Below are positions 1-19,728 of a stretch of 64,000 bases of DNA, one piece after another; position 1 is the first letter of the stretch; every line of letters starts with the position of its first letter. The position numbers and the translations under genes are program-made. The DNA lies in IMG/VR virus record IMGVR_UViG_3300031952_000001, positions 124,001-188,000 of that record; one strand, 5' to 3'. The notes under the pieces are model-generated. The model did no database searches. It was not told the DNA's origin and saw only the letters and a list, made by a program, of their open reading frames with translations.

Positions 1-60
1 GAGCCGACGAAGGAACTCGATCCCGGTTTCTTCCTGTTTCTTCTCGGTCATGTTGCCCTC

Positions 61-276
61 CTAGTCGCCCTCGTCGGGGAGCGGAATGCCGCCGATCTCG
101 AAGTAGGACACGGCGAGCACCTTCCCGTTCCCGTTGTCGAACTCGGTGCACATCTTGGGGTTGTAGCCCTCGGGTGCGACGATGATCAGGTTCAGCCCAC
201 CTTCGTCGACTCCGATCACGTCGTCCCCGTCCCACCCGGACAAGTACATTCGAAGCTCTTTCACCGTGCACGCCAT
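61..276 (-). CDS. small acidic hypothetical protein
   Basis: ORF with GAGGAGG RBS, tightly packed in the leftward operon. Confidence 0.75.
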   Translation of the reverse strand: MACTVKELRMYLSGWDGDDVIGVDEGGLNLIIVAPEGYNPKMCTEFDNGNGKVLAVSYFEIGGIPLPDEGD

Positions 277-277
277 C

Positions 278-532
278 TCAGACCTCCTCGGTATCTTCGC
301 CGTTCTCGGTTATCTGGAAGAACTCGGGATCGGACCCCTGCGCGACCAGCTCTTTCGCCATTTTAGAGGCGGTCAGGATCTTTTCCCCTTCGTCGATGAC
401 GACCCCTGAACAGTGGCCCTCGCTCATCTCGTAAGCGATGGTTTCCAGGCTCAGATCGTCTCGAAGCGGCTCCTCACTCAGAAGCTCGATCTTGTAGGTC
501 CGCTTGTAGAACTTGCGTTTGCTCTTCGCCAT
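278..532 (-). CDS. hypothetical protein
   Basis: ORF with AGGAGG RBS, packed operon. Confidence 0.75.
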   Translation of the reverse strand: MAKSKRKFYKRTYKIELLSEEPLRDDLSLETIAYEMSEGHCSGVVIDEGEKILTASKMAKELVAQGSDPEFFQITENGEDTEEV

Positions 533-541
533 GTCGTCCTC

Positions 542-760
542 CTAGTCGTCCTCGTCGTCGAGGGGGGAGAGCTGACCGACGATCTCTGCGATCCAACGCA
601 GACCCCCATTATCCGCGAGATATTCGAATTGCCCCTCGGGGCCGCTGTTGTTGATCGTCGCAGCCTCTTCGTTTTTGAGATCGCGCACGTACTCGTCGAG
701 CGCGCCCTCGGATAGTTTCAGAGCCCGCTGTCGCAGAGCTTCTTTTCTGTCGTTGTTCAT
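542..760 (-). CDS. small acidic hypothetical protein
   Basis: First gene after the minus-strand class 1 promoter; AAGGAG RBS. Confidence 0.75.
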   Translation of the reverse strand: MNNDRKEALRQRALKLSEGALDEYVRDLKNEEAATINNSGPEGQFEYLADNGGLRWIAEIVGQLSPLDDEDD

Positions 761-805
761 CGTCTTCTCCTTGTTGTGAGTCGGGTAGTCATCCCGCCTT
801 GCCCC

Positions 806-866
806 AATGTAACACAGGCAAATCGGCGGTCAAGGGGCTTGACTCTCTTTTCCCGGTGGTTACATT
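806..866. promoter_or_regulatory. Back-to-back divergent class 1 promoters
   Basis: Minus strand TTGACC(833-828)-16-TACATT(811-806); plus strand TTGACT(839-844)-16-TACATT(861-866). They coincide with the coding strand switch. Confidence 0.85.
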
Positions 867-905
867 TCCCGCTAGGCAGGGCAACGACCAAACGAGGAGG
901 ACGAC

Positions 906-1349
906 ATGGCGGTCAACTGGACAGCGAAACCGGTTCTCACGGACGAGATGGACGAGGGTTTCCGTGTGGTAACGGTGGACGGGGTCAAGCTCAAGTGGTC
1001 GGGCACGCTAGACGTCCCGGATCTAGGAGAGCAAATCCACGTCACGTTCAACGGGTTCGGTCGTGGGTTCGTGCGCGGCTACTGCTACATGGACGGGTTC
1101 GCCGCGCTGCTCGTCGAGCCGGAGAAGTTGCCCGATTGGTACGTCAAGCAGTCAAAGACAACGCACTACAAGCCGGAAATGCCCATGAAGATCATCACCG
1201 TCTTCGGAATCGAATTCAAGACCGTAGATGATCCCTTCCGGTGCCGGTACGACGACTGCTCGAAGGGATACCCGGTCGCCACGGACGACGAACACGTAAC
1301 TTGCCCCGCGTGTCGGAAGGATATGGGCCTGCCTCCCTTGACAGCCTGA
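906..1349 (+). CDS. hypothetical early protein with C-terminal Cys4 zinc-ribbon-like motif
   Basis: GAGGAGG RBS; CRYDDC...CPAC; the stop codon lies inside the next promoter repeat. Confidence 0.8.
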   Translation: MAVNWTAKPVLTDEMDEGFRVVTVDGVKLKWSGTLDVPDLGEQIHVTFNGFGRGFVRGYCYMDGFAALLVEPEKLPDWYVKQSKTTHYKPEMPMKIITVFGIEFKTVDDPFRCRYDDCSKGYPVATDDEHVTCPACRKDMGLPPLTA

Positions 1350-1399
1350 AACCGGTGGTTACATTGGGTAGCAGGGACAGCGAACAACGGGAGGGCAAC

Positions 1400-1639
1400 A
1401 TGGCAACACAGGTCATCGTGAAGAAAAAGAAGTTGTCGGACGGTTCCGAGGTGTTCAACGTTGTGCTCGTGTTCCCCCTTGGTGGTCGTGTGACGTGCCA
1501 CATGGACAGCGAGAAGTCGGCGGAAGATCTGGAATTCCAGTTCAACCGGATTTTCGATCCTGAGAAGACCGGGATACCCACCTTCGGGAAGGCGAACGGG
1601 ATCATCGAAATTTGGGTCGACGGCGACGACTTCAAGTAG
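1400..1639 (+). CDS. hypothetical early protein (LSDGSEVFNV motif)
   Basis: ATG after GGGAGG, downstream of the promoter at 1338. Confidence 0.75.
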   Translation: MATQVIVKKKKLSDGSEVFNVVLVFPLGGRVTCHMDSEKSAEDLEFQFNRIFDPEKTGIPTFGKANGIIEIWVDGDDFK

Positions 1640-1709
1640 AAGCCCTTGACAGCCTGAAACCGGTAGTTACATTCCCAGCCAGGGGAAACGAACAACCGAG
1701 GAGGACCGC

Positions 1710-2291
1710 ATGAGCATCGGGGAGAAGGGCACGCTTCCGGCCGAAGTCGTCAACGATATGAAGAAGTCGGCACTCATGGGCGGCATGGTGCCCAAGTCGT
1801 TCGTCGAGTACCACCTGGCGCTCGCCAAGCGGGCGCTTCCGGCCCTGGTGAGCCGGTTCAGGGTCGAGATCGTGACGACGTTCGTCAAGTCGGGCGGGTG
1901 GTTCGACGGCATGAACAACCTGCGCGCGATCCTTCGGAAGTCGGACAACACGCTTCTGGAGATCGTGTGGTACGCATCGGACGGATCGGGCTACTGGATG
2001 AAGGACACCGGGAACGGCCAGGTGATGCTCTTCCCGGAGGACGTAGGCACCCCGCTCAAGTACATGGTTTGCGGACTGGAAGGGGGGATGCTCACGTTCG
2101 ACGACGAATCCGCTTTCGTCATGGAGATGGAGCGGCGAGGGTTCAAAGAGACGTCCCGTAGCGACTCGGCCCCGTGCCACCATCCGAACCTGTGGGATCG
2201 TCCGCAATTCGATACGTTGTGCGGCCCGATGAAGCATGACGATTACATCCGTTATGATACGTGGGAGGAGAACGAGGCGCTTTCGCGCTAG
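1710..2291 (+). CDS. hypothetical early protein
   Basis: GAGGAGG RBS; own promoter at 1646. Confidence 0.8.
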   Translation: MSIGEKGTLPAEVVNDMKKSALMGGMVPKSFVEYHLALAKRALPALVSRFRVEIVTTFVKSGGWFDGMNNLRAILRKSDNTLLEIVWYASDGSGYWMKDTGNGQVMLFPEDVGTPLKYMVCGLEGGMLTFDDESAFVMEMERRGFKETSRSDSAPCHHPNLWDRPQFDTLCGPMKHDDYIRYDTWEENEALSR

Positions 2292-2368
2292 TCCCTTGAC
2301 ACCCCGCAACCGGTGGTTAGATTGGGGGTGTGGGAAAGAGAACGGCCGCAACCGAGGGAAGGTGGACC

Positions 2369-2683
2369 ATGGCGTATCCGGGGATCATAAATGTTTCCAG
2401 TAAGTACGGTGCTCCGATGGGTCGCGGGAACCGAATTCCCACGGAAGAGTACAAAGGTGCCACGTACTACAACGTCGGCCCCGCGTGCAAGCTCCACCTC
2501 CGCCGTCTCCGCTTCGTGGACGGTTGCTATGACACGGGCGGCGCGTATTGGGGAATGCCCGCCAATCTGTATCACGCGGTCAACGCGGATCGGACTGTCG
2601 AGGTGTTCGTTCGGGCGGACAGCCGCGAAGAGGCGAAAACAGCCGTGCGCGAGATTCTCCCCACGGTGGAATTCTTCAAGTAG
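2369..2683 (+). CDS. conserved-looking phage hypothetical protein (YGAPMGR...YDxGGAYWG motifs)
   Basis: Own promoter at 2296; motifs recalled from phage hypothetical proteins. Confidence 0.75.
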   Translation: MAYPGIINVSSKYGAPMGRGNRIPTEEYKGATYYNVGPACKLHLRRLRFVDGCYDTGGAYWGMPANLYHAVNADRTVEVFVRADSREEAKTAVREILPTVEFFK

Positions 2684-2693
2684 GAGAGGGACC

Positions 2694-2831
2694 ATGAAGA
2701 TCACAGTCGAGAAGATCAACGGGTATCTGGTTCTGTCCGCAATCGTCGGCGGGTATCTGGTGCGGCGCAAGTACATGTACTACACGGTCAAAGAGGCGAG
2801 GGCCATGTTCCGCGCCGAGTGCACCGGCTAG
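2694..2831 (+). CDS. 45-aa hypothetical protein
   Basis: MKITVEKINGYL...; AGGAGAGG RBS; TAG abuts the next promoter. Confidence 0.65.
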   Translation: MKITVEKINGYLVLSAIVGGYLVRRKYMYYTVKEARAMFRAECTG

Positions 2832-2902
2832 CACTTGACAGCCCGCAACCGGTGGTTACATTGGGCGGGAGAGGCAACGACCGCAACCGGGGGAGGGACG
2901 CC

Positions 2903-3349
2903 ATGAAAGAGCCCAAGATCACAATGGAGACGCTTCGCACCGCGTTGACGATCATCGAGGAGTGCGGCGGAATTTCGAAGTTTTTGGGCGAAGATGCACC
3001 GTGCCGCCCTTCCCAGTCTTACACGAAACAGCCTACCCGGCTCGCGGTTCTCAACGCCGTCGAGGACACCGTCACGTTCGAAAGGATCGAGCGGGCGCTC
3101 CGCGCGATCTTCACCCGCCAGTGCAACGGCTACGTCCACGAGCGGACGGGGCGCGAGGACACGGAGGGGATGATCCGAGACGAGCGGCGCGAGGCCAAGC
3201 TCCGCGCCAAGGCCGAAGAGCTTGCCAAGCGGATCGGCCTGTCGATCCATTTCAACGGTGACCCACGCGGCGCGGCGATCAAGATCCACACCCCGCGCAC
3301 GGGTGCCTACAACTCTTTCGGAGGTGCCGAAGACGGATGGTGCGTTTAG
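2903..3349 (+). CDS. hypothetical early protein (CNG...GDPRG motif)
   Basis: Own promoter at 2835; GGAGG RBS. Confidence 0.8.
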   Translation: MKEPKITMETLRTALTIIEECGGISKFLGEDAPCRPSQSYTKQPTRLAVLNAVEDTVTFERIERALRAIFTRQCNGYVHERTGREDTEGMIRDERREAKLRAKAEELAKRIGLSIHFNGDPRGAAIKIHTPRTGAYNSFGGAEDGWCV

Positions 3350-3417
3350 CACTTGACAGCCGCTAGCCGGTGGTTACATTGGGGCAAGGGACAGCGAACA
3401 ACCGGGAGGTGTGAGTC

Positions 3418-3699
3418 ATGGCGAACCGTCATCGGGAAGCACTGGAGATCCAAGAGGGCGCGTGCAACGTCCGGGCAATCGCCCGCGCGCTCGTCAAGGC
3501 GGCCGACGAGGCGGGTAACGAGGGCGGCCCGAATCCGCGCGAGGACGCGGCGGTTCGCCTCATAGCGCACCAGATCGCTTTCTTGTGCAACGTCGCGGAG
3601 ATCGACAACGGTTTCCTGGTGTACTCGAAGCTCGAAGACGAGTGCCGCGCGAAGCGTCCGCCGGTCCCCCCGTGCGAGCGCACCGGTTCCGAGGGCTGA
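3418..3699 (+). CDS. hypothetical early protein
   Basis: Own promoter at 3353; GGAGGTG RBS. Confidence 0.75.
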   Translation: MANRHREALEIQEGACNVRAIARALVKAADEAGNEGGPNPREDAAVRLIAHQIAFLCNVAEIDNGFLVYSKLEDECRAKRPPVPPCERTGSEG

Positions 3700-3781
3700 A
3701 AATCGACGCGGCTACCCCTTGACCGCCTGAAACCAGGCGTTACATTGGGGCAAGGCGGAAAGAACAACCGGGAGGCACGAC

Positions 3782-4231
3782 ATGAAGCGCACCGTTGAGA
3801 TCAACGACACCTTGGACGAAACGGTCAAGTCGGCTTGTGATAGCGTCAAAGACGAGGCGCTTTCGTACCTGGATAGCAACGGGGATGAGGACACGGACGA
3901 AGCCCCGGATCTGAACGATCTCGACGACAGGGGCGCGATCCACGAGATCATCGACGGCGCGACTCCGATCTACAACGGGGAGATTCGGGATCTGTGGTAT
4001 CTGTACGCTTCCGACTTCGAGGCGGCGCTCGACAACGCGGGTATGGAGACGACGGCGGACAACCGGCAACAAATCGCGATCTTTTGCTACCTGGAACAAA
4101 CGGTTCTGGGCTGGTACGAGGGCGAGAAGGGCGCGATCTTCGACGAGTGGCGGGAGAAGAACCCGATCCCGGAAGACGAGGACGACGACGAGGAGGAGGA
4201 AGACGAGGAGGAGGACAAGCCCGCCAAGTAG
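3782..4231 (+). CDS. ocr: Ocr (T7 gp0.3)-like acidic DNA-mimic anti-restriction protein
   Basis: About 30% Asp/Glu with an acidic tail. DDRGAIHEIIDGATPIYNGEI aligns by eye with T7 Ocr [21 protein letters not shown], and CYLEQ with RIYEQ. Confidence 0.72.
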   Translation: MKRTVEINDTLDETVKSACDSVKDEALSYLDSNGDEDTDEAPDLNDLDDRGAIHEIIDGATPIYNGEIRDLWYLYASDFEAALDNAGMETTADNRQQIAIFCYLEQTVLGWYEGEKGAIFDEWREKNPIPEDEDDDEEEEDEEEDKPAK

Positions 4232-4313
4232 GAAATCGACCGGCGACCCCTTGACCGTCCCGCCCCGGTGGTTACATTGGGGCAAGGCGAGACGAACAAC
4301 CGGGAGGTGCGGT

Positions 4314-4793
4314 ATGAGGTTCTACACGACTGACGAGATCCGCAAGGTCGCGAAGGGTCACTTTTTCGACCGCGATGCGATGCGGTTCTTCGACTCGCGC
4401 GTGTGCCTCGATGCGTTCGACGGTCCGGGCGGGTGCTACTTCGTGACCTCCGAGCGTATGCGGGGGATCTGCAACTACCCGGCGGGAAAGCGGCTGTACA
4501 CCGTTCGACGGTTCAACCGGAAGACGGGCGCGGTCACGACCCCGCAGTCGTTCCAGGGCTTCGCCAGCCGCACCGGGGCGCTCGCCGCCGCAAAGCGCGC
4601 CAGCGAGGACGCCAGTCCCCGGAGCGCCGCCGCGTGGAAAGCCGCACGCACCCGCGAGGACAACAAACGGCGGGCCGAGGCCGAGGCGTCCCACCAACGT
4701 TGGCTTGCCCATGTCGCGCCGATCCGCGCTCGCGAGATCGAGGAGGACAGGCAACGCAAGATCGAGCGGTACCCGGAGCTTGCGGCCGAGTAG
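4314..4793 (+). CDS. phage hypothetical protein (GHFFxxxAMRFFxSR...YFVTSE motif)
   Basis: Own promoter at 4251; GGAGGTG RBS. Confidence 0.75.
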   Translation: MRFYTTDEIRKVAKGHFFDRDAMRFFDSRVCLDAFDGPGGCYFVTSERMRGICNYPAGKRLYTVRRFNRKTGAVTTPQSFQGFASRTGALAAAKRASEDASPRSAAAWKAARTREDNKRRAEAEASHQRWLAHVAPIRAREIEEDRQRKIERYPELAAE

Positions 4794-4881
4794 GGAAACG
4801 GCACGCCCACCGCTTGACAGCCCGCAACCGGTGGTTACATTGGGCGGGAGAGGCAACGACCGCAACCGGAAGGGGCGCGAC

Positions 4882-5181
4882 ATGGCGATCCGCGTATACG
4901 ACAACGGATCTCTCTACTCCATTTCTTTCGGGGAAGACGAGATCGAGAGGTTCATGGATTCGTGGCCGTGTTCCGGTTTTGATGGGTTGCGGAACGTGTG
5001 GGCACAATTCGAGAAGTCGAACGGCGATCTTGTCGACCTGGAGTGCAACCGGAGACACGGCGCGGGGAGGTTCGACGGCGCGGCTATGGTCGCCCTCGTC
5101 GATGATATGCAACGCGAGGCGATCCGCCGCAAGGGGAAAGCCTTGGGCGTCGAGTCGCACCTCGAAAGGTTCGCAAGCTAG
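4882..5181 (+). CDS. hypothetical early protein
   Basis: Own promoter at 4814. Confidence 0.75.
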   Translation: MAIRVYDNGSLYSISFGEDEIERFMDSWPCSGFDGLRNVWAQFEKSNGDLVDLECNRRHGAGRFDGAAMVALVDDMQREAIRRKGKALGVESHLERFAS

Positions 5182-5250
5182 GCACTTGACAGCCCGGCCC
5201 CGGTGGTTACATTGGGGGATAGGCAAGCGAACAACCGAAAGGGGCGCAAC

Positions 5251-5523
5251 ATGGGAAAGCGGGACGTCGAAATGGTGCCGTTCGGCCGCTTGATGGACCT
5301 GTTGGACCGGCCGGACGCGGATCGTTTGGGGTTCAAACGGGGCAAGGGGATTTTCGACGATTGCCGGGTGGTTTGCTACGCTTCCCGGTCCATGCTCCGC
5401 GAGGTGTGCCGCTTGACGCTCGATCTCGACTTGGACCGACAGGTCGTTGCGCTCGTGAAAGACAAGGTCGCGCCGAACATGGTCGCGATCCCCACGTTCG
5501 AGGTTGAGACGGGCCGGGAGTAG
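5251..5523 (+). CDS. hypothetical early protein
   Basis: Own promoter at 5186. Confidence 0.7.
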   Translation: MGKRDVEMVPFGRLMDLLDRPDADRLGFKRGKGIFDDCRVVCYASRSMLREVCRLTLDLDLDRQVVALVKDKVAPNMVAIPTFEVETGRE

Positions 5524-5573
5524 AATCGAACCGGGCGGGCCGACTACCCACCCCACGACAAGGAGAATTTCAC

Positions 5574-5708
5574 ATGGCGAAGGATCACGCGGCGAAGCGT
5601 CTGGCGGTCGAGCTTGCCATGCTCGACGTGTACACGATTCTCGGAATCGACACGTCCCTGCAACGGGCGAGGGTCACGTTCGCCAAGGTCGAATACGAGG
5701 CGCTCTAA
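5574..5708 (+). CDS. 44-aa hypothetical protein (not in ORF track)
   Basis: AAGGAG RBS; MAKDHAAKRLAVELAMLDVYTILGIDTSLQRARVTFAKVEYEAL*; TAA directly abuts the next ATG. Confidence 0.6.
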   Translation: MAKDHAAKRLAVELAMLDVYTILGIDTSLQRARVTFAKVEYEAL

Positions 5709-5849
5709 ATGAAGACAGGGCGCAATGACCCCTGCCCTTGCGGTAGCGGGCGCAAGCTGAAACGGTGTTGCGAGGCCGCCACGCGCCCCACAGTGGGCGG
5801 AAAGCTCGCGGTGGCCCTCCGGTGGGTCCTCCGGGCGCTCGCCGGTTAG
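5709..5849 (+). CDS. 46-aa SEC-C metal-binding motif mini-protein (not in ORF track)
   Basis: [21 protein letters not shown]... matches the SEC-C consensus [18 protein letters not shown], followed by a short hydrophobic/basic helix. Confidence 0.8.
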
Positions 5850-5967
5850 CGGGGCAACTAGAGCCCTCCGGCGAGATGGGCAGAATCGACCGGCCCACCC
5901 CTTGACCGTCGCTAGCCGGTGGTTAGATTGGGGGTAGGCAAGCAACGCAACCGGGGAGGTGGGGATC

Positions 5968-6606
5968 ATGGCGTTCGACAACGGCAGGATCGCGGTGGAC
6001 GTGAAAGAGCTTCCGGCGGCGCTTCAAAGGGCGCTCGCTTCCGTGGGGTACGGGCGGAAAAGCATCGACGTCATGCCAGCCGAAACGGCGAGCCTGAGCG
6101 GCGCGGGCGGCGACGGATACCAGGCTTTCGCGACCGTCGTCAACCTGGAGACGGGCGAGTACCGGACCGAGTGGGGATCGTGGGGTGGTGCGAACATGTT
6201 TAACCCCCGCAACGCGGTAGACAATGACCGGAAGGATTACCCGATCCCTGAGAACGGGGCCGTGATCACGGGCCACAAAGGTGGCGGGCGTCCGGTGTAC
6301 GCCACGATCCGCGTAAACCCGGCGGCGCTCGCGCCCCTACTCCCGGCCAAGGCCGAGCTTTCCGAGCGTCAGAGGGTCATTCTCGGAACGGTCCGGGGTA
6401 CGAAGGGCGGCGCGTATCGCCTCGAAGCGTTGAAAGAGTATGGTGTCACGACGGAAGAACTCGACACCTTGATCTCGGGCGGTTTCATGAAGCGGAACAA
6501 GGCGGGCGCGATCTCCATGACGACGGCGGGCGAAAATGAGGCCATGACCGGCGGGCGGCGAGACTCCATCGTTTACGCATACCGGCAGGCCACTCGCGGG
6601 TGGTAA
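5968..6606 (+). CDS. hypothetical early protein, possible C-terminal winged helix
   Basis: Own promoter at 5902; C-terminus LSERQRVIL...ELDTLISGGFMKRNKAGAISMTTAG resembles a wHTH. Confidence 0.75.
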   Translation: MAFDNGRIAVDVKELPAALQRALASVGYGRKSIDVMPAETASLSGAGGDGYQAFATVVNLETGEYRTEWGSWGGANMFNPRNAVDNDRKDYPIPENGAVITGHKGGGRPVYATIRVNPAALAPLLPAKAELSERQRVILGTVRGTKGGAYRLEALKEYGVTTEELDTLISGGFMKRNKAGAISMTTAGENEAMTGGRRDSIVYAYRQATRGW

Positions 6607-6689
6607 ATCGACCGCTCGACCCCTTGACCGCCGCTAGCCGGTGGTTAGATTGGGTGGGAGAGGCAACGACCGCAACCGAGGGGGACCGA

Positions 6690-6935
6690 ATGAACGTCAA
6701 CGAGATCGAGCGCGGTATGGTTCAAGTCATCGTCCCGCCGTCGTTCGTCGCGGCCTTGATCGGAGTGTTGCAGGTTTCGATCCGGCGCTCCGGGACCGTT
6801 ACGGTTTGGTACGCAAACGGAACCACGGCCATGGCGCGGAATCTCTTGGGGCGGAAAGGGGCGATCCCGGACAGCGTTTTCGACCTGGATCGGATGGTTA
6901 AAGAGTCGCGGGGAATCGACCGGTCCACCCCTTGA
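6690..6935 (+). CDS. hypothetical early protein
   Basis: Own promoter at 6624; its TGA is part of the next -35 box. Confidence 0.7.
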   Translation: MNVNEIERGMVQVIVPPSFVAALIGVLQVSIRRSGTVTVWYANGTTAMARNLLGRKGAIPDSVFDLDRMVKESRGIDRSTP

Positions 6936-6999
6936 CCGGCCGAAACCGATGGTTATATTGGAAGGGCAGGGGAAAGAGAACGGAAGCGAGATAGAGATA

Positions 7000-7065
7000 C
7001 GGCCCGATATATTCTAGTAGCCTAGATCACGGGTTAGCGAGGTTCGACTCCTCGCCGGGCCGCAA
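7000..7065 (+). ncRNA. tRNA-like small RNA (acceptor stem and T-arm, no canonical D-arm or anticodon arm)
   Basis: CGGCCCG(7000-7006)/CGGGCCG(7056-7062) stem; GCGAGG-TTCGACT-CCTCGC T-arm (7037-7055); 3' CAA. It sits directly behind the promoter at 6932. Confidence 0.6.
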
Positions 7066-7096
7066 GGGGAAAACGAACAACACCGGGAGGTGTGAC

Positions 7097-7405
7097 ATGG
7101 CGAAGCTGATGGAGATCGCGAGGGTCAACGTGGACGGGAAGACGGCCAAGCGGATCAACGTCGCCAAGCAGAACGCCCGCGCCGTCGAGAAGGCCGAGGA
7201 CAGGATCGTGCGGATCTCCAGGTTCGCGCACGAGTGCATCGCGGCGGACAAGCCCGCCGTCGTCCGGGAGTCGTGGATCGTCCGGGCGCTCGTCGATCTC
7301 CTGTCGGGTGCGTCCTACTCGCCCCGCGAGCATGAGATCCTCGCCCGCGCCTTGGCGAACGTCCGCCGCGAGATCGCGGTACAGTCGGCCGGTTGCGCGG
7401 ACTAG
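7097..7405 (+). CDS. hypothetical early protein
   Basis: GAACAAC leader and GGAGGTG RBS. Confidence 0.75.
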   Translation: MAKLMEIARVNVDGKTAKRINVAKQNARAVEKAEDRIVRISRFAHECIAADKPAVVRESWIVRALVDLLSGASYSPREHEILARALANVRREIAVQSAGCAD

Positions 7406-7416
7406 GAAGGCACCCG

Positions 7417-7605
7417 ATGAAAACCCTCATGGACGATCTCTTGTACGCTTGGGGAGAGTTGATCGATCTCAGGCGCAAGGTACGAGATAAAGGCGGGCCG
7501 TGGGGTGCGGCCGATCTGGCGGTACACGAAAGGCTCGTTTCTGAGATCGATACCCTCGTCGGGAGGTTGCCGGAGGGTTGGAAGGCGTGGAAGGAAGAGG
7601 GTTAG
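7417..7605 (+). CDS. hypothetical protein
   Basis: Packed ORF; TAG abuts the AATCGAC box of the next repeat. Confidence 0.65.
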   Translation: MKTLMDDLLYAWGELIDLRRKVRDKGGPWGAADLAVHERLVSEIDTLVGRLPEGWKAWKEEG

Positions 7606-7690
7606 AGAATCGACCACCCCACCCCTTGACCGCCCGCCACGGGTGGTTATGTTGTGAGGGTAGGGAACGAACAACGGAAAGGGGCGGAAC

Positions 7691-8026
7691 ATGGCGCGGG
7701 GATATCTGGTAACGTCGCGGAACGGCAGAAAAGCGGTGTTACTAGACGTTCGCACCCTGTCAACCGTCCCGGTGTCCATGTCGACGTGGGCGATCATTTC
7801 GGGATCGTCGCCGCCGGATCAAGACTACCGGATCGTGATCCATCGGTGGGAGATTCGCGACGGCAAAGCGATCTTGACGGTGGGTAACGTCGTCCTCGAA
7901 GACGTTGAGGCCGATCTGGAAGTAGACGAGGCCGATCTAAGCCCGCCCAAGGGTAAGGGGTGGCGATGGGATTTCGGGGAGTGGGTTAGGGACACCCGCA
8001 AGGGGCGCGAGGCGTGCCAGCCCTGA
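7691..8026 (+). CDS. hypothetical early protein
   Basis: Own promoter at 7626. Confidence 0.7.
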   Translation: MARGYLVTSRNGRKAVLLDVRTLSTVPVSMSTWAIISGSSPPDQDYRIVIHRWEIRDGKAILTVGNVVLEDVEADLEVDEADLSPPKGKGWRWDFGEWVRDTRKGREACQP

Positions 8027-8109
8027 GAATCGACCGGCGACCACTTGCACGCCCAAAACCGATGGTTATATTGGTAGGGTAGCAGAAAAACCCACGGGAG
8101 GTGCGAGAC

Positions 8110-8520
8110 ATGGCGACCAAGATCAACCCCCAGATCAAGATCATCGCGGACACCTACAACCGGAAGATCGACAAGGCCAAGAGCAATCTCGCGCTCGCGG
8201 TGCGGCAGTTGTCCACGGTAGACAAGACCGTCCGGCGCGTCGAGGTGGACCGGGCGACGGGGCAGATCAACGAAGTCGTGCGGCACCTGGCGCACCCGTT
8301 CGAGATCGCCCGCGCCGTCGCGGTCGTGGACCGGTGCAAGGCCGAGGTCGCGGCCCTGGTAGATGCGAGGGACCTGGCGATCATGGGAGTCGAGATCGAC
8401 GCCGAGGCCAAGGGTCGCCGCGAGGCCGCCCGCCGCGCTCGCGACTCGTACACCCTGGCGTGCATCGAGGACGGCACGGACCGCACCGTCGACATGGACG
8501 GGGAGGTGTGCGCCGCGTAA
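8110..8520 (+). CDS. hypothetical early protein
   Basis: Own promoter at 8045; GGAGGTG RBS. Confidence 0.7.
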   Translation: MATKINPQIKIIADTYNRKIDKAKSNLALAVRQLSTVDKTVRRVEVDRATGQINEVVRHLAHPFEIARAVAVVDRCKAEVAALVDARDLAIMGVEIDAEAKGRREAARRARDSYTLACIEDGTDRTVDMDGEVCAA

Positions 8521-8576
8521 CTACACCGGACTACACCGGGGAGATCGGGGACCGCAAACAAGGGGAAGGTGAACCC

Positions 8577-8861
8577 ATGTCACTGGAAATCAGGAACGAG
8601 GAACACTACAACGCAGTCGTGGCCTTCGCCGAGGCGGAGGGGATCGGGGATAAGCTCCGCGAGGTGTTGGACTACCTCGACGGGTACGCCAATCACGACG
8701 CCCGCGAGAAGGGCGAGCCGGACGCCACGATCTGTAAGCTGTTCCCGGATTTCGCTCCGCAGTCGTTCAGTTTCGTCATGGAGAAGGGCGGCCGGTTCTG
8801 GTTCAACGGTGGGGCAATCTTCTACGGTGCCAGCGATCCGAGGTGGGGGGTGCACACGTAG
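8577..8861 (+). CDS. DUF4120-like protein
   Basis: LFPDFAPQSFSF...WFNGGAIFYG...WGVHT matches the recalled DUF4120 pattern DFAPxSFxF..NGGxIxHG..WxxHT. Confidence 0.65.
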   Translation: MSLEIRNEEHYNAVVAFAEAEGIGDKLREVLDYLDGYANHDAREKGEPDATICKLFPDFAPQSFSFVMEKGGRFWFNGGAIFYGASDPRWGVHT

Positions 8862-9318
8862 GCCAACCCTCGCCCAACCTTCGACACCTACAGTCAACCA
8901 CTCCAGACTACCCCAACCTTCGACCCACTCAAAACAAAGATGAGGGGGGAGATCTCCAGGTTGCCAGCTAGGGGCAGGGGGGAAAGGTAGACTAGCTCTT
9001 TCCCTGGTAGTCAAGGGTCAACCTCTCCCCTGGTAGGTGTTCCCCTGGTAGGTAGCAAAGGCCGCTAGTTGTCCCACCAGGGGTTTCCGCAGGTCCATGG
9101 CAACCCTCGCCGAGCCCTCGCCCAAGGTCAACCGGAAACCTGAGATCCCGACAACCCTAGACAAGCCCCCTGGTAGGCTCGCCAGTCGCCTCGAACGAAA
9201 CCCTACCCCTACCAGGGGGGAAGGACAAGGGACCGGCCCACGGCGGCGCTCCGCGAGCCTCGACAAGCCTATAGGAGACGGGCCGGGATCTTGACTACTC
9301 GCCGAGGCTGGAGATATA

Positions 9319-9385
9319 TATGGTCACGGCGTGACCATACATTCCCGTGACCATACATGTATGGTCATGACCATATGTGACCATA
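9319..9385. repeat. TGACCATA direct/inverted repeat cluster (6 copies)
   Basis: Forward copies at 9332, 9348, 9368, 9378; reverse copies (TATGGTCA) at 9319 and 9360. Confidence 0.85.
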
Positions 9386-10703
9386 CCGGGCCGGTGAATC
9401 TCGGCACGAGGGGGAGATCGGGGTGATAGGTAAGAGATCGGGATTATGGGGAAATCTCGGATCGTTTGGATCGGTTAGGGGTAGACGTAGGGGGAGGGGG
9501 GAGATGTAGGCATATAGGGGGGAGGTGGATTGGAGCAGCCCCACGATCACATCATCACCCGACAGAGATCGCGCAATCTTTGCGTACCTCGCAAAAAGGT
9601 CACAACACATGCCACATCCAACCCTCGATCCCGCGATCTCCATCGATCCCGCCTAGAGATCGCGCAACCATCCGTCAACCCTCGATGATCTCCCCCAATC
9701 TCCATCAAGAGTCGGCCGAGATCGGCCAATCTTGGCCTGGTACGGGCCGAGCTTGGCCCTTGTCGGGCCGCCCGGACCTTCGCCGATCTCCGCCCACCTT
9801 GAACCACAATCGATGGACCTGGACACGAGCCCGATGGATCGGCCGGCGCTCGCACATGTTGGTAGAGATTAGCTAATGATTACGGTATGTTAAAGGTGTA
9901 GGGCCAAGGTTGCGCCGAGCATGGGCGGGGATCGGCCGATGGATCGGGGAGGCCGGGGGAGATCGGGGAGGATTGCGGGGGGATTGGGCAATCTCTGCCC
10001 CTGATTGCGCGATCCCCATCGGATCGCGTGCTAGATCGCGCGATCTCGAAAGATCGGGGGCTGCCCCCAATATACACCGACCCTCCCCAACATTCCCAAA
10101 ATCCCATCGGGTCCCATCCTATACCTTACAAATCCTTGAAATCATTGAATAATATTTCCCGAAAATTCCGGGTCCCCTTTTTCCCCTACAACCCTGCCCA
10201 AAAAGGAGCCTGGCTTCTAGATCCGGCCAAGGTTTGGGTCCCCTCCTATGGTACAGGTAGGGTTGCCCGAGCCCGGCCGAACCCTGGGCCGCCAACCCTA
10301 GGCCAACCCTGCTGGAGGAACCCTGGACACCTCAGACGGAACCCCTTGCTGCCGGCGGCCCCTCAAGGTCGACCCCAACCTCCAACCCTTCCAACCTTCC
10401 CAACCCTTCCCAAGACTACCCCAACCCCAGGGCAAGGCAGGGTTGGACCTTCAGCAACCCTTCAGCTGAACCTTGAACCAAAGGTACCCGGGGTTGGGCC
10501 CCCAGGGGAAAATAGGGATCGCGATCTCGGTCTGGAGGGATCGGTGGAGGGTTGCCGAGTCGAACCCTACGTTGAGGTAACCTTACAAGGGTTGGAGGTA
10601 AGTATAGGTTCGAGGGTTGAAGGGAGGGTTGCCGAGGGTTGAGGAACCCGGGGACCTCAGGCCCCCTCAAGGTTGGAACCTTGGGATCGTGCGATCTACA
10701 GGG

Positions 10704-10735
10704 TTGACCTTGGGAAGGTGGCTGTGTTATATATT
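10704..10735 (+). promoter_or_regulatory. sigma70-type promoter (class 2)
   Basis: TTGACC-18-TATATA(TT), upstream of the gene at 10756. Confidence 0.6.
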
Positions 10736-10755
10736 CAGCCACGGGAGGTGTTACC

Positions 10756-11181
10756 TTGAGACGCACTATGAAGCAAAAGCTGATCGGCTGCAAAGATGGA
10801 GCTGCAAAAGAGATCGAGAGGCTTCTGGCCCGCATGGAGGAGCTGAGGGCTTTGATAATCATGGTTGACGGAATCCTGGAGGGGGAGAAACCCCTGGAAG
10901 ACGACCCTCGTGCGCACCTCAGGGCGTCCAGGGGATCTGGGAGGATCAACGACCTGCTTCTGGCGGCGTGCGTTGATTGGAAGACGATCAACGAACTCAT
11001 GGAGGTGGTCCCTGAGCTGCAAGGGAGACACCCCGCGGGGATCAGCACGCGGTGCCGCCTTCTGTGGCTGGGTGGGCTCCTGGAGCGCCGATCCGCCGTT
11101 CCTTGTCCTCCCGGGAGGTACCCTCGCAAGGGGAGGGCGGGGTACACGTACAAAACGTTGAAGACCGCTCTCAGAGAATGA
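10756..11181 (+). CDS. coiled-coil + winged-helix DNA-binding protein (paralog 1 of 3)
   Basis: ACVDWKTINEL...ISTRCRLLWLGGLLERR is shared with the ORFs at 12936 and 19729; TTG start after GGAGGTG. Confidence 0.7.
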   Translation: MRRTMKQKLIGCKDGAAKEIERLLARMEELRALIIMVDGILEGEKPLEDDPRAHLRASRGSGRINDLLLAACVDWKTINELMEVVPELQGRHPAGISTRCRLLWLGGLLERRSAVPCPPGRYPRKGRAGYTYKTLKTALRE

Positions 11182-11204
11182 GGGCGTGTAGGAGGAGCAA
11201 GAGG

Positions 11205-11591
11205 ATGCAGGAGTTCGACCCATCGAAGATCGAAGATGTTCTCGATCCCGTTACGGGCGAGGTGGTGGCCCGATGTCGAGTTCTACGGTGTACCATTTGC
11301 GGCAGGAGGGAGTTTTACCCTCGTCGCATCCGGTGGGAGGGCTCTGTTGCTCACTGCCCGAACCCACGTTGTAGTGGTGCTGGAATAAACATTGATCTGC
11401 GTCCGAAGGCTACCCTGTACCACCGTGAACGTCCTCCGAAGCAGATCAAGAGGGTCGAGGTGAGGTGCACCAACTGCCTCAAGGTCTGGGGAGCCAACGC
11501 GAAAAAAGGAATCCCACTCCGATGTGATTTCTGTGGGGTCATGGGTGTAGTTGAGAAGGTCTCTCAAGAGCCCTCTGAGCAGGGCGCATAG
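11205..11591 (+). CDS. double zinc-ribbon protein
   Basis: CTICG, CPNPRC, CTNC, CDFCG. Confidence 0.65.
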   Translation: MQEFDPSKIEDVLDPVTGEVVARCRVLRCTICGRREFYPRRIRWEGSVAHCPNPRCSGAGINIDLRPKATLYHRERPPKQIKRVEVRCTNCLKVWGANAKKGIPLRCDFCGVMGVVEKVSQEPSEQGA

Positions 11592-12463
11592 AAAGAGGAG
11601 CAAGAGGATGCCGAGCAAGAAGAGGAAGCTGATCAAGACGACCGGGGAGCCCCTGGAGCAGCCGAAGGTTCTCTCCCAAGAGGAGATCAATGCGTTGAAC
11701 CTGGAGACCCTGGACTACCTGGTGGCACGCCTGCACGAGTACCGGAGACGGGAGGACATGTCGAAGATCTCCGTGTCCGTGTCGGAGACCCGGCCGATCA
11801 AGCCGGTGTACCCTCAGGAGGGTGGAGACCACATCGGGTACGTCCAGAAGGGGCCGCGGGTCCTGACCATCGTGATCCAGGACTTCGAACACGACGGGCA
11901 CATCCGCGCCGCGGGGGAGGCCTGGTGAGCGTCATGAACGACACGAACCCTGTGCTGACCATCATCGCGCCCCTGTTCGGAAACCCCTTCGCAACGAGCC
12001 TGGCGCTCGCTCGGGCATGGTTCGAGCGAGCCTACCCGACCGACACGCCCCAGCAGGTGTACGTCACCGTCCGGAGGATCCCATGAAGAAGGTGAACTAC
12101 AGCGATCCTACCCCGTGGACCTGGGAGGAGATCGCGAAGCTGAACGGGCCGGCGTACTCGGAGTTCCTGGAGGTGTATGGGGACCGGGGCAAGGTCGCGA
12201 TGGTGATCGCCGAGACCATCGAGGACGGCAGGTACGCGATCTACGACAGGGACTACTGCAACTGGGGAGGATGCCACTTCTGCCCTCTGTGGGCCCCGGA
12301 AGGGAGTGAGTGGTTCTCCCGGGAAGAGCATCAGAAGTATGCCTTCGCATACTGCTTGGAGTTGTCCTTGATCGTCTACACCCGCATGGTCAAGAAGCTC
12401 GGTCGACTGCCCGCATGAGGCCGGGGTAGGGTTCAAGGGTAGACAGACAGGCGACTCGTAGGC

Positions 12464-12856
12464 CTATTCGAGATCTTTGAGGCTTACCCGGGCGGAGAAC
12501 TTCTCAAGGGTCTTTCCGTCGTCTCCGCACAGGTAGGCCTCCTCGTCGAAGTAGACGAAGCGGACCTGGCTGTCCTTCAGGGTCACGATCAGCTGCGCCA
12601 GGTTGATTTTGACTACCCCGCCCTCCTCAGCTTTCAGGTGTGTCCTCATGCTGAAGATCTTCACATGCTCGCTGGCAGGAGGGATACCGTCTGGGGCTGT
12701 TCGACCAAGGAGTTTCAAATCGAAGTTGCCGTTGAAGATCGCGACAGGGGTGAACCTGACTTCAGCCACATCTCCGAGGATGTAAGATCCTTGATCCGGT
12801 ACAAAGTCCGGATCTCCGAGCCTCTCTGTGGGGGTGTACATGACTTTTAGAAACAT
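12464..12856 (-). CDS. phage hypothetical protein
   Basis: Clean ORF; C-terminal AYLCGDDGKTLE motif. Confidence 0.7.
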   Translation of the reverse strand: MFLKVMYTPTERLGDPDFVPDQGSYILGDVAEVRFTPVAIFNGNFDLKLLGRTAPDGIPPASEHVKIFSMRTHLKAEEGGVVKINLAQLIVTLKDSQVRFVYFDEEAYLCGDDGKTLEKFSARVSLKDLE

Positions 12857-12935
12857 TGGATGCCTCTCTTTCTGTCTTCTGTTTTCGAACTACCTGTCTG
12901 TCTGAGGAAGAGGATACCGCCGGCCTCGGGAGCTG

Positions 12936-13595
12936 TCAAGAGGGCTTGCGACGGTATCGGTGCTCTCGGGGGGCTCCCTGACGCTTCAAGGGGACGTCCT
13001 CCCGCTCCAGGAAGCCCTTGTCTAGGAGCCTTATGAGGTACGGTCTGAAGTTGGCGTGGCAGACCACCGAGAATCCCGGGATCAGCTTCTTCAGATCGTG
13101 GATAGTGTACCAGGTGTCGTGCTCTTCGAACCATTGGCGGAGGATCTTCTCGAAGTCGCCATAGCTTCGACGAGGTATCCTTCCGGACCAGAAGGCAGGC
13201 CCTGCGTTCAGGGATCGGTACTCGTACTCCTGGTGATTGAGAGGGTTGTGGGGCGGGAGGGCGACTTGGCGGCGTTCCAGGCACCCACGCACCCACAAGT
13301 CTCGGCACCTGGTGCTGATGTTCGATTTTGAGAGGTTCCCGAATTTCTGGAGGTCGGAGAGCTGGCGGACAGTCTTCCAGGATTGACAGGCGGTGAAGAT
13401 CTTCTGATCAGTACCTCTAGGTGCCGGCTTTTCGGAATTCTCTCCAAACGGTGCGTCCGTCTCCTTGGAAGGTGTCAGGATGTCGTCCAAGGTCTTGATC
13501 ACACCCCTCAAAACGGCGACCCGGAGTTCGAGTGCTTCCAGCTCCTGGAGGGTTTCGTCTCGGTACCTTCTGGTCTTGTCGTCCAGGGATTCCAA
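12936..13595 (-). CDS. coiled-coil + tandem winged-helix protein (paralog 2 of 3)
   Basis: TRRYRDETL; ACQSWKTVRQL...NISTRCRDLWVRGCLERR; second wHTH-like unit YTIHDL...LIRLLDKGFLERE. Confidence 0.7.
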   Translation of the reverse strand: MESLDDKTRRYRDETLQELEALELRVAVLRGVIKTLDDILTPSKETDAPFGENSEKPAPRGTDQKIFTACQSWKTVRQLSDLQKFGNLSKSNISTRCRDLWVRGCLERRQVALPPHNPLNHQEYEYRSLNAGPAFWSGRIPRRSYGDFEKILRQWFEEHDTWYTIHDLKKLIPGFSVVCHANFRPYLIRLLDKGFLEREDVPLKRQGAPREHRYRRKPS

Positions 13596-13598
13596 TGT

Positions 13599-14594
13599 TC
13601 AGCCCTTGGTCTCGGTGGGGTTCATGAGATCGCCGACGAATTCGTAGACAGCCCCGAACCCGTGTCGCTCGATGCAGAACTTCTGGACCTTGTCCGCGAA
13701 CGCCTGCACGGCCTCCTTGCTGGCGGCGGCGAGGAACGCTGCCTGCGCCACCCGCCACTGCTCGCACGCCTCCCCGTCCAGCTCCGCGAGGAGCTTCTCG
13801 GCCTGCTTGAGCGCTTCCTGTATCCACTCGGGGGAGATCTTCTCGGGCGTCGAGATCTTGCCGGCGAGGTAGACCATCGCAGCGCTCGCCCACCGTTCGG
13901 CGTGACGACCTTGGATGGCCTCGACCTCCGCGGCCTTGAGTTTCTCTTGGGTCTTCTCCAGCTCGGCGTGAAGCCTCGACCGGTCCTGCTGCAAGGTCTG
14001 CTCTATGCGGAACGAGGGGCAACCGTCGCAGCCGCCGTTCTCCATCTTCCTCACCTGCTCCCGAGCAGCGCAAGTCGGGTTGCCGTGGGCATCCCCGAGC
14101 AGGTGCTCGCAGATGCCGGCAGACAGCTTGGAGCACTCTTCTTCCAGCCTTCCGCACTCCTCCCCCAGGTTCCCGTTCTCGGCCTCGGAGTCGTCGAAGC
14201 GCTCGGTCAGCTTCTCCAGCTCGACGTCGAGCCGGGCGAGGTGTCCCTCGTGGTTCAGCACCAGCGCTCCGGCCTCCGCCAGTGCCAGGTCCTTGTCGCG
14301 GAGGGCTGCTTCGAGCTGGGAGATCCTCTCACGAGGACCCTCGAACTCGGCCCTGCGCCGCTCCAGCTCCTCCAGCGGGGCCGGCGAGTTGCGGACCTCC
14401 GGCTTGCTCCACGGAGAGTCCCTCCATTTCAGGCAGGAGAGCACGGCCAGAGCCTCGGCCGGGTCGAGGCCCCCGCGGCAGGCGAGGTCCTCCAGGGACT
14501 GGTCGTGGTTCGTCAGGGCCTGTCCCTCGTAGGGGGCGATCATCTCCCAAGGGATCGACGGACCGCTCATGATCGGGAATCTCTTCGGTGTCAC
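13599..14594 (-). CDS. coiled-coil phage hypothetical protein
   Basis: N-terminal IPWxMIAP..QALTNHDQSLEDLACRGGL motif plus heptad-rich region; GTG start after GGAGG. Confidence 0.7.
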   Translation of the reverse strand: MTPKRFPIMSGPSIPWEMIAPYEGQALTNHDQSLEDLACRGGLDPAEALAVLSCLKWRDSPWSKPEVRNSPAPLEELERRRAEFEGPRERISQLEAALRDKDLALAEAGALVLNHEGHLARLDVELEKLTERFDDSEAENGNLGEECGRLEEECSKLSAGICEHLLGDAHGNPTCAAREQVRKMENGGCDGCPSFRIEQTLQQDRSRLHAELEKTQEKLKAAEVEAIQGRHAERWASAAMVYLAGKISTPEKISPEWIQEALKQAEKLLAELDGEACEQWRVAQAAFLAAASKEAVQAFADKVQKFCIERHGFGAVYEFVGDLMNPTETKG

Positions 14595-15802
14595 TTCGGG
14601 ACCTCCTTCCAGTCTCTCCACTGCAACGACCAGCCCTGCTCGTGACCGAACTTCCCGTCCTTGAGCACGGTCCTCGCCAGGACCATCTCGACACCGATGG
14701 CGGTGATCTCGATGGTGTCCGTGTATCCCCAGCCGTCTGTCGACTCAGCTCCAACCAGCCGAGTCCCAACCACCCAGCCTTTCCGCCGGCAGATGTCGGC
14801 GTCGGTCTCGGTTCGTACCTTCATTGAGAAGCCCATCGTTCAGTCCTTCCTGGTCTCAGTGCGGTTCACAGAAACCCCATAAACCATGAGATCACCAGCC
14901 CCGCCAAACTCGCGCCCACACAGAGACCCGAAACGACGGCGATGGCGACTATCGTGTCTTTTGATTCCTGTTTCACTGTGCCTCATCCTCCTCGTCCACG
15001 ATCTGCGCGGGAAGGGAGGCGCGCAGCCGCGTCTCAGGATTTATGAACATTTCCTCTTGCAACGCCGCGATCCAGCCGACCACAGCACCCATTTCACACC
15101 GGAGTCGGGCCGTGCGCGTAATCTCCTTTGCCTTCCGAGCTTTTCCGATGCAACGTTCCATCTCATCGTGTACCAGTCTCGTCATCTCCCTAGCGCCCGC
15201 TGCGAACGCCGCGTCCCGCTCTGCCAGCATCTCCTCGAAGTACGCGACCAGCGCGAGGCGGGCGGCATCTTCTGTTTCGTCGTCCTCCTCGAAACAGGTT
15301 CTCCGAAATTCATCCAGCAGCTCCTCGAACCGTGCGTCAGTCATTTCGGCACCTCCTCGTTCGGAAAATCTCGGCGGCAGGCGGCGCAGCGGGTGGGCCA
15401 CGTCTGTGCGCTCTCTCGCCTCAGTCGCTTATCGTACCGGGAGCAATAGAACCCATGTGCCAGCTCCAGATGTCCGTGGTGCCACATGGTCAGCAGATGG
15501 CACCTCTCCCCATCGATGCACTTCGGGCGCTCGGCGGTCATCGGGGGCCTCCCTTGCGTCGTTCGATTTCGTAAAGCGTGCACGCGCTGGCATTCGCTCC
15601 GGTGCAGGTGATGAAGCAGTTCTTGGCGCAACTGCAACCACCCTTGTAGTGGCGACAATGAGAGCAGATGAAGAACTCCCAACCGCAGGCGGCCTGTATC
15701 TGCATCACTCCCTCGATTCCGGGTGATGGCATCGAACCTGTCATGTTGGGCTGCGCGTAGTAAATGCGGGAGCCGTATACAACGTGTGGACCGTACTGGA
15801 CG

Positions 15803-16099
15803 TCAGTCATCGCCCTCCCCCTTCGTCACCGGCGGCGCGATGAACAGGTGAAAAACGAGCGCGCCGTTTTCCATCATGAAAGTTCCGACGTGCCGATACT
15901 CGAAGACCTTGTCGTAAATCGGGTGTCCAGTTCCCGCGAGGTGAAACTTTCGAACCTCATCTACGGCGTTCGGATCAACGAGTGCCCAGATGCACGGCTG
16001 CCCGCGTTGCACGTCCACGTGCAGGATGCGTGCCCCTGTCGGTATGAGAATTTCAAAGTCGTCCAGAATCTGGAACGTGTACTTGTAAACGGTCTTCAC
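15803..16099 (-). CDS. conserved-looking phage hypothetical protein (DUF7352-like)
   Basis: KTVYKY...PTGARILHV..QRGQPCIWALVD...GTGHP...HVGTF...LVFHLF; family name recalled, not searched. Confidence 0.65.
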   Translation of the reverse strand: MKTVYKYTFQILDDFEILIPTGARILHVDVQRGQPCIWALVDPNAVDEVRKFHLAGTGHPIYDKVFEYRHVGTFMMENGALVFHLFIAPPVTKGEGDD

Positions 16100-16883
16100 T
16101 TCGTCCCTCCTCTCGGCGGCGCGGAGATCGGCACGGGCCACCACCGAGAGAATTCGTGAACGTGGTGCGGACGCTCGTCTCCCGACTTGAGCACAGTGTC
16201 GCTGGCGATGTAGAAAACGATCTGCGGTGTCAACGTCTCGATCTGAACCCACCACCACGTATCCGTCTCCTTCGGTGCCTCCGTCGTCCACTTCACCTCC
16301 GGTCCAGGCACGGCGTCGGCGGCGGCGAGCGCCTTGATAGCATCGCTCAATCCGAACATCGCCTCGATCATGGTGGGGTGTTTGTCGAACCAGATCTTGT
16401 CGCGGTCGATGTTGATGTCAACGTGCGCCATCGTGTCCCACGCGACCTTGAACGCCTTCCGAACCCGCTCCACCCTCTCCTCCTCCGTCCCCTGCCCGTG
16501 GCCGGGCGCGCGGAGGGTAATGTCCGTGCTGTTGACGCATTCGCCCGGCTGCGCCTCGCGCATCTGGTAACTAGACTCGAATTCCTCCGGGTGCGGCGTG
16601 CGTGCGCTCAACGCCATCTCGCTCATCGCTACGTCCACCGGGTGCGGCTTCTGTGTCGAGTTCATCTCAACCCTCCTCTTTCTGTCCATCTCCCGTTGCA
16701 AGCACCGTGCCGGGCGCGAGCTTGAGTTCGGCGATCTGTTCCCTTAATTCGGTCACGACTTCCAGGTGCCTGAACGCCCGGTCGAAACTGCGCCCGATGA
16801 CGACGACGAGAACCGCCGCCATGATGCAGAATTCGGTTATGACTACGACCGCGAACGTGTCGAATGTTACGTACTCAGGCATC

Positions 16884-17348
16884 TCAGCCTCCCTTCGGTT
16901 CTTCCCCCGTGCCGGGCGCGAGGGAGGATTTCGCGAGTTCCTTGTCCGCGCACGGCAGACACGTCACGGCCCGCTTGTCGCAATCGCTGAATGCCTTGCC
17001 GCAGATGCAGCAAATGTTTTTGTAGTGTCCCGGTGCCCATCCGCAGTGGGGTTCCGGTGTCGGCGTGCCGGGCGCGAGGGAGGAGGCGAACTCGGAAAGA
17101 AATATTGGAACGCACCGCCTCACCGTGATGGAATCATACTGCTCTGCACCATCAGCCATCAGCCACTCCGCGAACCTCCGCGCGCCCTCCTCCACGCCCG
17201 CAGCGTGGCCGAGTAGGTAGCCAGCGACGAACACACCCGACGCCTGCAACACCCCGTCGTCGTCACGTGGGCAATCACCGGACACCTCTGATTCCGACAA
17301 TTCCCATTCCTTCGCCGCCGCAGCGGATTGAGCGCGTAGGTTAGTCAT
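16884..17348 (-). CDS. Cys-rich phage hypothetical protein
   Basis: GWAPGHYKNICCICGKAFSDCDKRAVTCLPCA zinc-finger-like motif. Confidence 0.6.
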   Translation of the reverse strand: MTNLRAQSAAAAKEWELSESEVSGDCPRDDDGVLQASGVFVAGYLLGHAAGVEEGARRFAEWLMADGAEQYDSITVRRCVPIFLSEFASSLAPGTPTPEPHCGWAPGHYKNICCICGKAFSDCDKRAVTCLPCADKELAKSSLAPGTGEEPKGG

Positions 17349-19428: not shown

Positions 19429-19458
19429 ACTATATAGTCATGCCTGTGGGAAAGTCAA
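19429..19458 (-). promoter_or_regulatory. class 2 promoter
   Basis: TTGACT-TTCCCACAGGCATGAC-TATATAGT. Confidence 0.7.
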
Positions 19459-19728
19459 GAGGCCAGAAGGGTTCCAGAACGTCGAGTGCCTTGAGGGTCG
19501 TCGAGACCAGGTTATGCTCGTGCATGTACCAGTCGATGTGTTGGTCAAGGAAGTTGTCGAGGTGCTCCTGCCGCTCCGCGAGCCAGACGTTCTTCTTGGT
19601 GATGAGCGCCACGAGGCTCCCGTACTTCCGTAGGTTGACCTCGATGGAGAACTCCAGGTTCTCGATGCTGGAGAGGCCTTCGCGATAGATGCTGTAGCAG
19701 GCCCCTTGCTCATTCACGAACCAGGTCT

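Follow-up and report, generated by a model that had tools for sequence, protein, structure and literature searches.

Does a small, highly acidic protein encoded by a large, high-GC environmental phage belong to the family of Ocr, the DNA mimic of phage T7, and what would such a protein do during infection? The question arises from a 64,000-nucleotide stretch of DNA (the window, to which all positions refer unless stated otherwise), which comprises bases 124001–188000 of a single virus record of 211,982 bp and 59.8% GC that originates from sediment metagenomes and is 100% complete according to CheckV. A first-pass annotation, made from the sequence alone, had read one gene of the window as a protein against restriction that resembles Ocr, in a phage unlike T7. 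The features of this locus, together with the terminase gene of the phage, are as follows.

3719–3746, + strand: sigma-70-type promoter-like site from a consensus scan, with −35 TTGACC (3719–3724), a 16-nt spacer, and −10 TACATT (3741–3746)
3770–3775, + strand: Shine-Dalgarno sequence GGGAGG, 6 nt before the ATG, read from the sequence
3782–4231, + strand: Ocr-like coding sequence of 149 aa plus stop codon (ORF calling, translation, homology, and model)
3806–4165, + strand: predicted Ocr-fold core, residues 9–128 (AlphaFold model; VIA-align ranges from 4–9 to 123–131)
3935–3985, + strand: signature motif AIHEIIDGATPIYNGEI, residues 52–68 (aligned with T7 Ocr by HMMER and by MAFFT)
4163–4228, + strand: disordered acidic C-terminal tail, residues 128–149 (composition and low pLDDT)
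61450–63705, + strand: large terminase, nearest to that of Virus Rctr197k (36% identity, 85% coverage)

The genome size and the terminase place the phage outside the T7 type. In addition to its nearest match, the terminase is 23–28% identical to those of large (194–258 kb) Vibrio and Pseudomonas phages and of phage NCTB, and, because even the nearest sequence is this distant, the phage lineage appears to be poorly sampled. The earlier description of a large, high-GC phage that is not T7-like was thus borne out by the length, the base composition, and the terminase, whose nearest relatives are those of large phages. A search of the genome for a T7-type RNA polymerase (PF00940) gave no match, which is little proof because control genomes also gave none. 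Virus Rctr197k comes from a methane-oxidizing enrichment culture.

The composition of the encoded protein resembles that of Ocr. Asp and Glu make up 47 of its 149 residues (31.5%) and Lys and Arg only 12, giving a net charge of −35 and a pI of 4.05; the corresponding values for T7 Ocr, translated from NC_001604, are 34 of 117 (29%) and −28. Further, of the 33 acidic residues of Ocr covered by the alignment, 16 have an acidic counterpart in the phage protein, compared with 8.3 expected from composition. Judged by its sequence, the protein thus appears to have the charge character of the Ocr family, being very acidic, poor in basic residues, and acidic where Ocr is acidic. The first-pass annotation had pointed to three traits, and all three were confirmed: a length of 149 aa with about 30% acidic residues, the pattern AIHxxxDxAxPxYxxxI, which HMMER and MAFFT place in register with the T7 Ocr stretch quoted there, and a poly-Asp/Glu tail. 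The tail contains an unbroken run of 15 Asp/Glu residues and is seen in the closest relatives only.

A word-index search with the protein retrieved 19 relatives, and their alignment, used as a query in turn, retrieved at least 610 protein clusters, almost all of which consist of unnamed metagenomic proteins. Among deposited phage genomes (50,697), neither tblastn with the protein nor megablast with window positions 1–20000 gave a match. The JGI contig Ga0505005_0000451 (59.7% GC) encodes a homolog that is 72% identical, and positions 6001–10012 of the ENA contig k141_8975 (117 kb, 37% GC) contain, among small genes, an Ocr-like gene whose product is 52% identical; with a homolog in a contig of 37% GC, the family spans phages of very different base composition. 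Homologs occupy similar small-gene regions on other large phage contigs as well. On k141_8975, the neighbors of the homolog include genes for a sigma-factor-like protein (sigma-70 region 2) and for an SNF2-family helicase that carries DUF6011.

Across 60 aligned members, Asp-58, Pro-62, Ala-82, Gly-87, and Tyr-103 are invariant, Asp-58 and Pro-62 being part of the signature motif. The subfamily also has features of its own: Cys-102–Tyr-103 is conserved, and the N-terminal segment MKRT.EI.D.L (residues 1–11, window 3782–3814), in which Lys-2, Arg-3, Glu-6, Ile-7, Asp-9, and Leu-11 are nearly invariant in the 60 relatives, has no counterpart in T7 Ocr. Because the N termini of Ocr are located at the dimer interface (PMC4872106), this segment might, by analogy, take part in pairing.

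We next consider whether sequence comparison links the protein to Ocr. A search of PHROGs with the protein returned a single family, PHROG 2568 ("ocr-like anti-restriction"), at an E-value of 1.7e-4, with residues 21–143 aligned to positions 10–120 of the 161 positions of the profile; in a six-frame search of the whole genome, this profile matched the same locus alone (E 2.3e-6). Pfam gave a different picture. The Ocr family PF08684 did not match the protein even at an E-value of 10 and thus stayed below its curated threshold, and the sole Pfam match was to DUF7222 (PF23864; residues 35–97, E 0.018, 15.7 bits versus a cut-off of 27). Seven of the 19 close relatives matched PF08684 weakly (best E 0.032), and a precomputed PF08684 flag is carried by ∼30% of the 120 relatives listed, weak wherever it was graded.

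The protein alone retrieved nothing from PDB sequences with phmmer, and T7 Ocr was reached by family profiles only. Searched against 177,635 distinct PDB sequences, the profile of 19 sequences gave T7 Ocr as its sole match (E 0.096), in an alignment spanning Ocr residues 9–116 of 117; a profile of 60 sequences again ranked T7 Ocr at the top (E 0.44), which is no gain over 0.096. With hhalign, the E-values against T7 Ocr were 1.4e-4 for the first profile and, slightly better, 4.2e-5 for the 60-sequence profile. Identity to T7 Ocr is ∼20–23%. Taken singly, the E-values of 0.1–0.4 against PDB Ocr are borderline and nonsignificant; jointly, these profile comparisons point to Ocr.

The predicted structure points in the same direction. 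An AlphaFold2 model built from the 19-sequence alignment reached a pLDDT of 86.6 and a pTM of 0.77, with values of 52–54 across the last two blocks, in the tail. Its helices (residues 11–33, 52–60, 65–86, and 95–126) correspond one-to-one to helices A–D of Ocr, helix C being longer. When 48,161 PDB representatives were scanned without bias and independently of Foldseek, Ocr (1s7z) ranked first with a Z-score of 9.8 and an rmsd of 2.6 Å over 103 of 106 residues at 20% identity, and the chain ranked second had a Z-score of 6.2. Similarly, when the top 1000 chains from Foldseek were realigned with VIA-align, the seven solved Ocr entries, which include complexes with RNA polymerase, AriA, BrxX/PglX, and a type I methyltransferase, all scored between 9.2 and 10.3 (rmsd 2.3–3.4 Å, 101–114 of 105–117 residues aligned), and the next chain scored 5.6. 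In the Foldseek search of the PDB itself, Ocr accounted for seven of the top eight matches, with probabilities of 0.85–0.98 and target-normalized TM-scores of 0.49–0.61 but weak E-values of about 0.14–0.44; in the viral library of Foldseek, the list was headed by small phage proteins, among them protein 0.3 of a Yersinia phage. Because Z-scores below ∼13 can occur by chance in helical proteins, the case for Ocr rests on the gap of ∼4 Z units to rank two, on alignment over the full length, and on the concordance with the sequence evidence. The model thus predicts that the protein carries the four-helix Ocr fold. The first-pass annotation would have been contradicted by a fold unlike Ocr, and the comparison came out the other way, with Z-scores of 9.2–10.3 for Ocr versus 5.6–6.2 for the best unrelated chain; together with PHROG 2568 and the top rank of Ocr among PDB sequence matches, this supports its reading of the protein as Ocr-like.

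We propose that the protein is a divergent homolog of T7 Ocr (gp0.3) that is made early and acts as a DNA mimic against type I R-M and BREX, and we put the probability of this whole explanation at roughly 0.7. According to this proposal, the gene has a strong sigma-70-type promoter of its own, from which host RNA polymerase would transcribe it shortly after the DNA has entered the cell. The product, having taken the four-helix Ocr fold, would most likely pair as Ocr does, whose homodimer has the shape of ∼24 bp of bent B-DNA, and the resulting dimer would be elongated, strongly negative, and a mimic of bent B-form DNA. Homodimer prediction with two copies of residues 1–130 gave run scores of 0.41, 0.00, and 0.00, which speak neither for nor against pairing. 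Such a dimer would fill the groove in which type I R-M enzymes bind DNA and may also block related methyltransferase-based defenses, e.g. BREX PglX/BrxX, so that the unmodified phage genome would be protected. The activity of Ocr depends on its total negative charge and on charge in loops and DNA-mimicking regions, and Ocr homologs conserve these charge features (PMC4872106).

Before this proposal is compared with known systems, other readings of the locus have to be weighed. The open reading frame could be spurious, with no real gene behind it, as high-GC DNA is rich in long false ORFs and one of 181 aa overlaps the gene on the opposite strand (3740–4285). We rejected the latter as a gene because it is the usual high-GC artifact and the + strand frame is the conserved one. 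The + strand ORF lies beyond chance because its conservation extends to at least 610 protein clusters and because a promoter-like site and a Shine-Dalgarno sequence stand before it; its confidently predicted fold and, above all, its conservation across GC backgrounds, the 37% GC contig included, effectively refute a spurious frame, to which we assign a negligible probability. It is very improbable, too, that the likeness to Ocr arose by convergence or chance in an acidic helical protein with an unrelated role, e.g. as a chaperone or scaffold for an early protein. Middling Z-scores are indeed common for helical models, the sequence E-values against Ocr are borderline, and an acidic composition bias could inflate profile scores, but PHROG, the PDB profile search, hhalign, the partial Pfam flags, Foldseek, and both VIA-align scans all favor Ocr, the alignments extend over the whole of Ocr and keep the motif in register, and the next structure trails by ∼4 Z units.

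A different objection concerns the target rather than the fold. The protein could be a true DNA mimic with the Ocr fold whose main target is something other than type I R-M or BREX, the candidates being the RNA polymerase of the host, nucleoid proteins (H-NS, for instance), or a further DNA-binding defense, e.g. DISARM or a methyltransferase of the Panchino type. T7 Ocr has been solved in complex with RNA polymerase and with AriA of PARIS (PDB titles), and reviews note binding to H-NS and suggest a wider anti-defense reach (PMC12707154; bioRxiv 10.1101/2025.06.06.658234). The subfamily also has traits absent from Ocr, namely the near-invariant N-terminal segment, Cys-102–Tyr-103, the longer helix C, and the long tail, and its identity to Ocr is low. 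We nevertheless regard a different main target as unlikely: because Ocr mimics DNA without regard to sequence and thereby inhibits every type I enzyme (PMC4872106), an unchanged activity is the simplest prediction from a fold and a charge that have been conserved, and the data point to no particular alternative. A bolder version, in which the subfamily was retargeted to a protein that escapes inhibition by T7 Ocr, either a defense or a DNA-binding protein of the host, and its promoter-equipped cassette moved among large phages, is speculative, and we hold it to be unlikelier still; if true, it would mean a functionally distinct DNA mimic shared by large phages of very different GC content.

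The reading of the protein as an early Ocr-type mimic of DNA invites comparison with the T7 protein itself (gp0.3; Pfam PF08684; PDB 1S7Z; complexes 6R9B, 7EEW, 8Q56, 8V45, 8ZEK, and 9EX7). The two proteins share the four-helix topology, an Asp and Glu content of ∼30%, the AIH..D.A.P.Y motif in the region from helix B to helix C, an acidic C-terminal stretch, small size, a host-type promoter, and a location among small genes. The phage protein departs from Ocr, to which it is ∼20–23% identical, in being 32 residues longer and in falling below the Pfam threshold. Its N terminus is extended by 10 conserved residues that include Lys-Arg, its helix C is longer, its helix D contains a conserved Cys-Tyr, and its Asp/Glu tail is much longer; moreover, it is encoded by a 212-kb phage, whereas T7 is a podovirus of 40 kb that brings an RNA polymerase of its own.

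Proteins of PHROG 2568 have been annotated in non-T7 phages before, for example as gp86 of Rhodococcus phage ChewyVIII and in Cluster BD Streptomyces phages (PMC13313380). Like the protein described here, these lie outside Autographiviridae and include members from high-GC phages, and our protein matches the profile of the family; unlike them, it matches weakly, and its relatives are almost all metagenomic. Because Ocr-like proteins are already annotated in high-GC actinophages (PMC13313380), their presence in a non-T7 phage is not new in kind. The weak match to DUF7222 covers the motif-bearing segment and is shared by 6 of 19 relatives, but it lies below the curated cut-off, and DUF7222 is an uncharacterized family, for which a literature search found no paper that mentions it. 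ArdA and Arn are likewise acidic proteins for which imitation of DNA, and thereby a block to restriction, has been proposed or shown (established knowledge; PMC12707154), but they have different folds and are absent from the structural and sequence matches of the protein.

What is new is a very divergent Ocr member missed by Pfam, a large environmental branch to which it belongs, and its place in a promoter-cassette array of a jumbo phage. The Ocr family of DNA mimics is thereby extended to a complete 212-kb, high-GC environmental phage, and, with its protein clusters, at least 610 in number, lying below the Pfam threshold, the branch is missed by routine annotation. The branch could be of use for catalogs of anti-defense genes and for picking diverse Ocr variants against type I R-M, BREX, and PARIS. 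We note that the protein enlarges a known family by one member and reveals neither a new mechanism nor a new kind of system.

The promoter-like site of the gene is one copy of a repeated cassette (repeat families D1–D4), and its Shine-Dalgarno sequence lies within a conserved 5′ leader common to neighboring cassettes (families D3, D6, and D9). A consensus scan of window positions 600–9000 found 15 sigma-70-type sites versus 1.7 expected, and genome-wide, a strict promoter motif occurred in 25 copies versus ∼0 in shuffled sequences, with 12 forward copies at 124.8–131.6 kb and all seven reverse copies at 119.0–123.8 kb (genome coordinates). The cassettes, ∼25 in number and near-identical, form a divergent array that occupies window positions 800–8100 on the + strand and, upstream of the window, genome positions 119.0–123.8 kb on the − strand. 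Each consists of CTTGAC(A/C), a conserved spacer ...CCGGTGGT, TACATT, TAGATT, or TATATT, and a leader with GGGAGG, followed by one small gene, and, counted rightward, the seventh cassette is that of the Ocr-like gene. Such an array is reminiscent of the mobile early-promoter cassettes in T4-type phages and suggests, by that analogy, a shuffling of early genes as cassettes. A search of sequencing runs with the phage sequence returned DNA runs only, all from metagenomes of sediment, riverine, and freshwater origin, and none of RNA. A back-to-back promoter pair is present at window positions 806–866. Contig Ga0505005_0000451 has the same divergent cassette design at positions 2000–8100, with TAAATT as the rightward −10 element and several promoters duplicated exactly.

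The first-pass annotation had further taken the Ocr-like gene as support for an anti-defense role of the array and had suggested that the acidic mini-proteins encoded at 61–276 and 542–760 may be additional mimics. Neither suggestion found support. The two mini-proteins have no family matches, are 18–24% acidic, and have a net charge of −9, and Pfam and PHROG scans of 20 neighboring small proteins gave no anti-defense assignment. Because no other gene of the array was assigned such a role, a single Ocr-like gene is not enough to give the array as a whole an anti-defense character. The following neighbors gave matches, and the remaining scanned neighbors had weak, sub-threshold matches at most.

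906–1349, + strand: weak, sub-threshold match to a RING/U-box-like zinc-binding motif (Pfam E 0.0016)
4314–4793, + strand: DUF7447 protein adjoining the Ocr-like gene downstream (Pfam E 3.6e-17; PHROG 4655)
5709–5849, + strand: mini-protein of 46 aa with a SEC-C zinc-binding motif (Pfam E 1.8e-10)
8577–8861, + strand: weak, sub-threshold match to DUF4120 (Pfam E 4.8e-5)

The SEC-C mini-protein is preceded in the same cassette by a 44-aa ORF (5574–5708). It is possible that the Ocr-like gene and the DUF7447 gene form a conserved early-gene partnership. On contig Ga0505005_0000451, a DUF7447 gene is found at 4253–4747, two genes upstream of the Ocr homolog.
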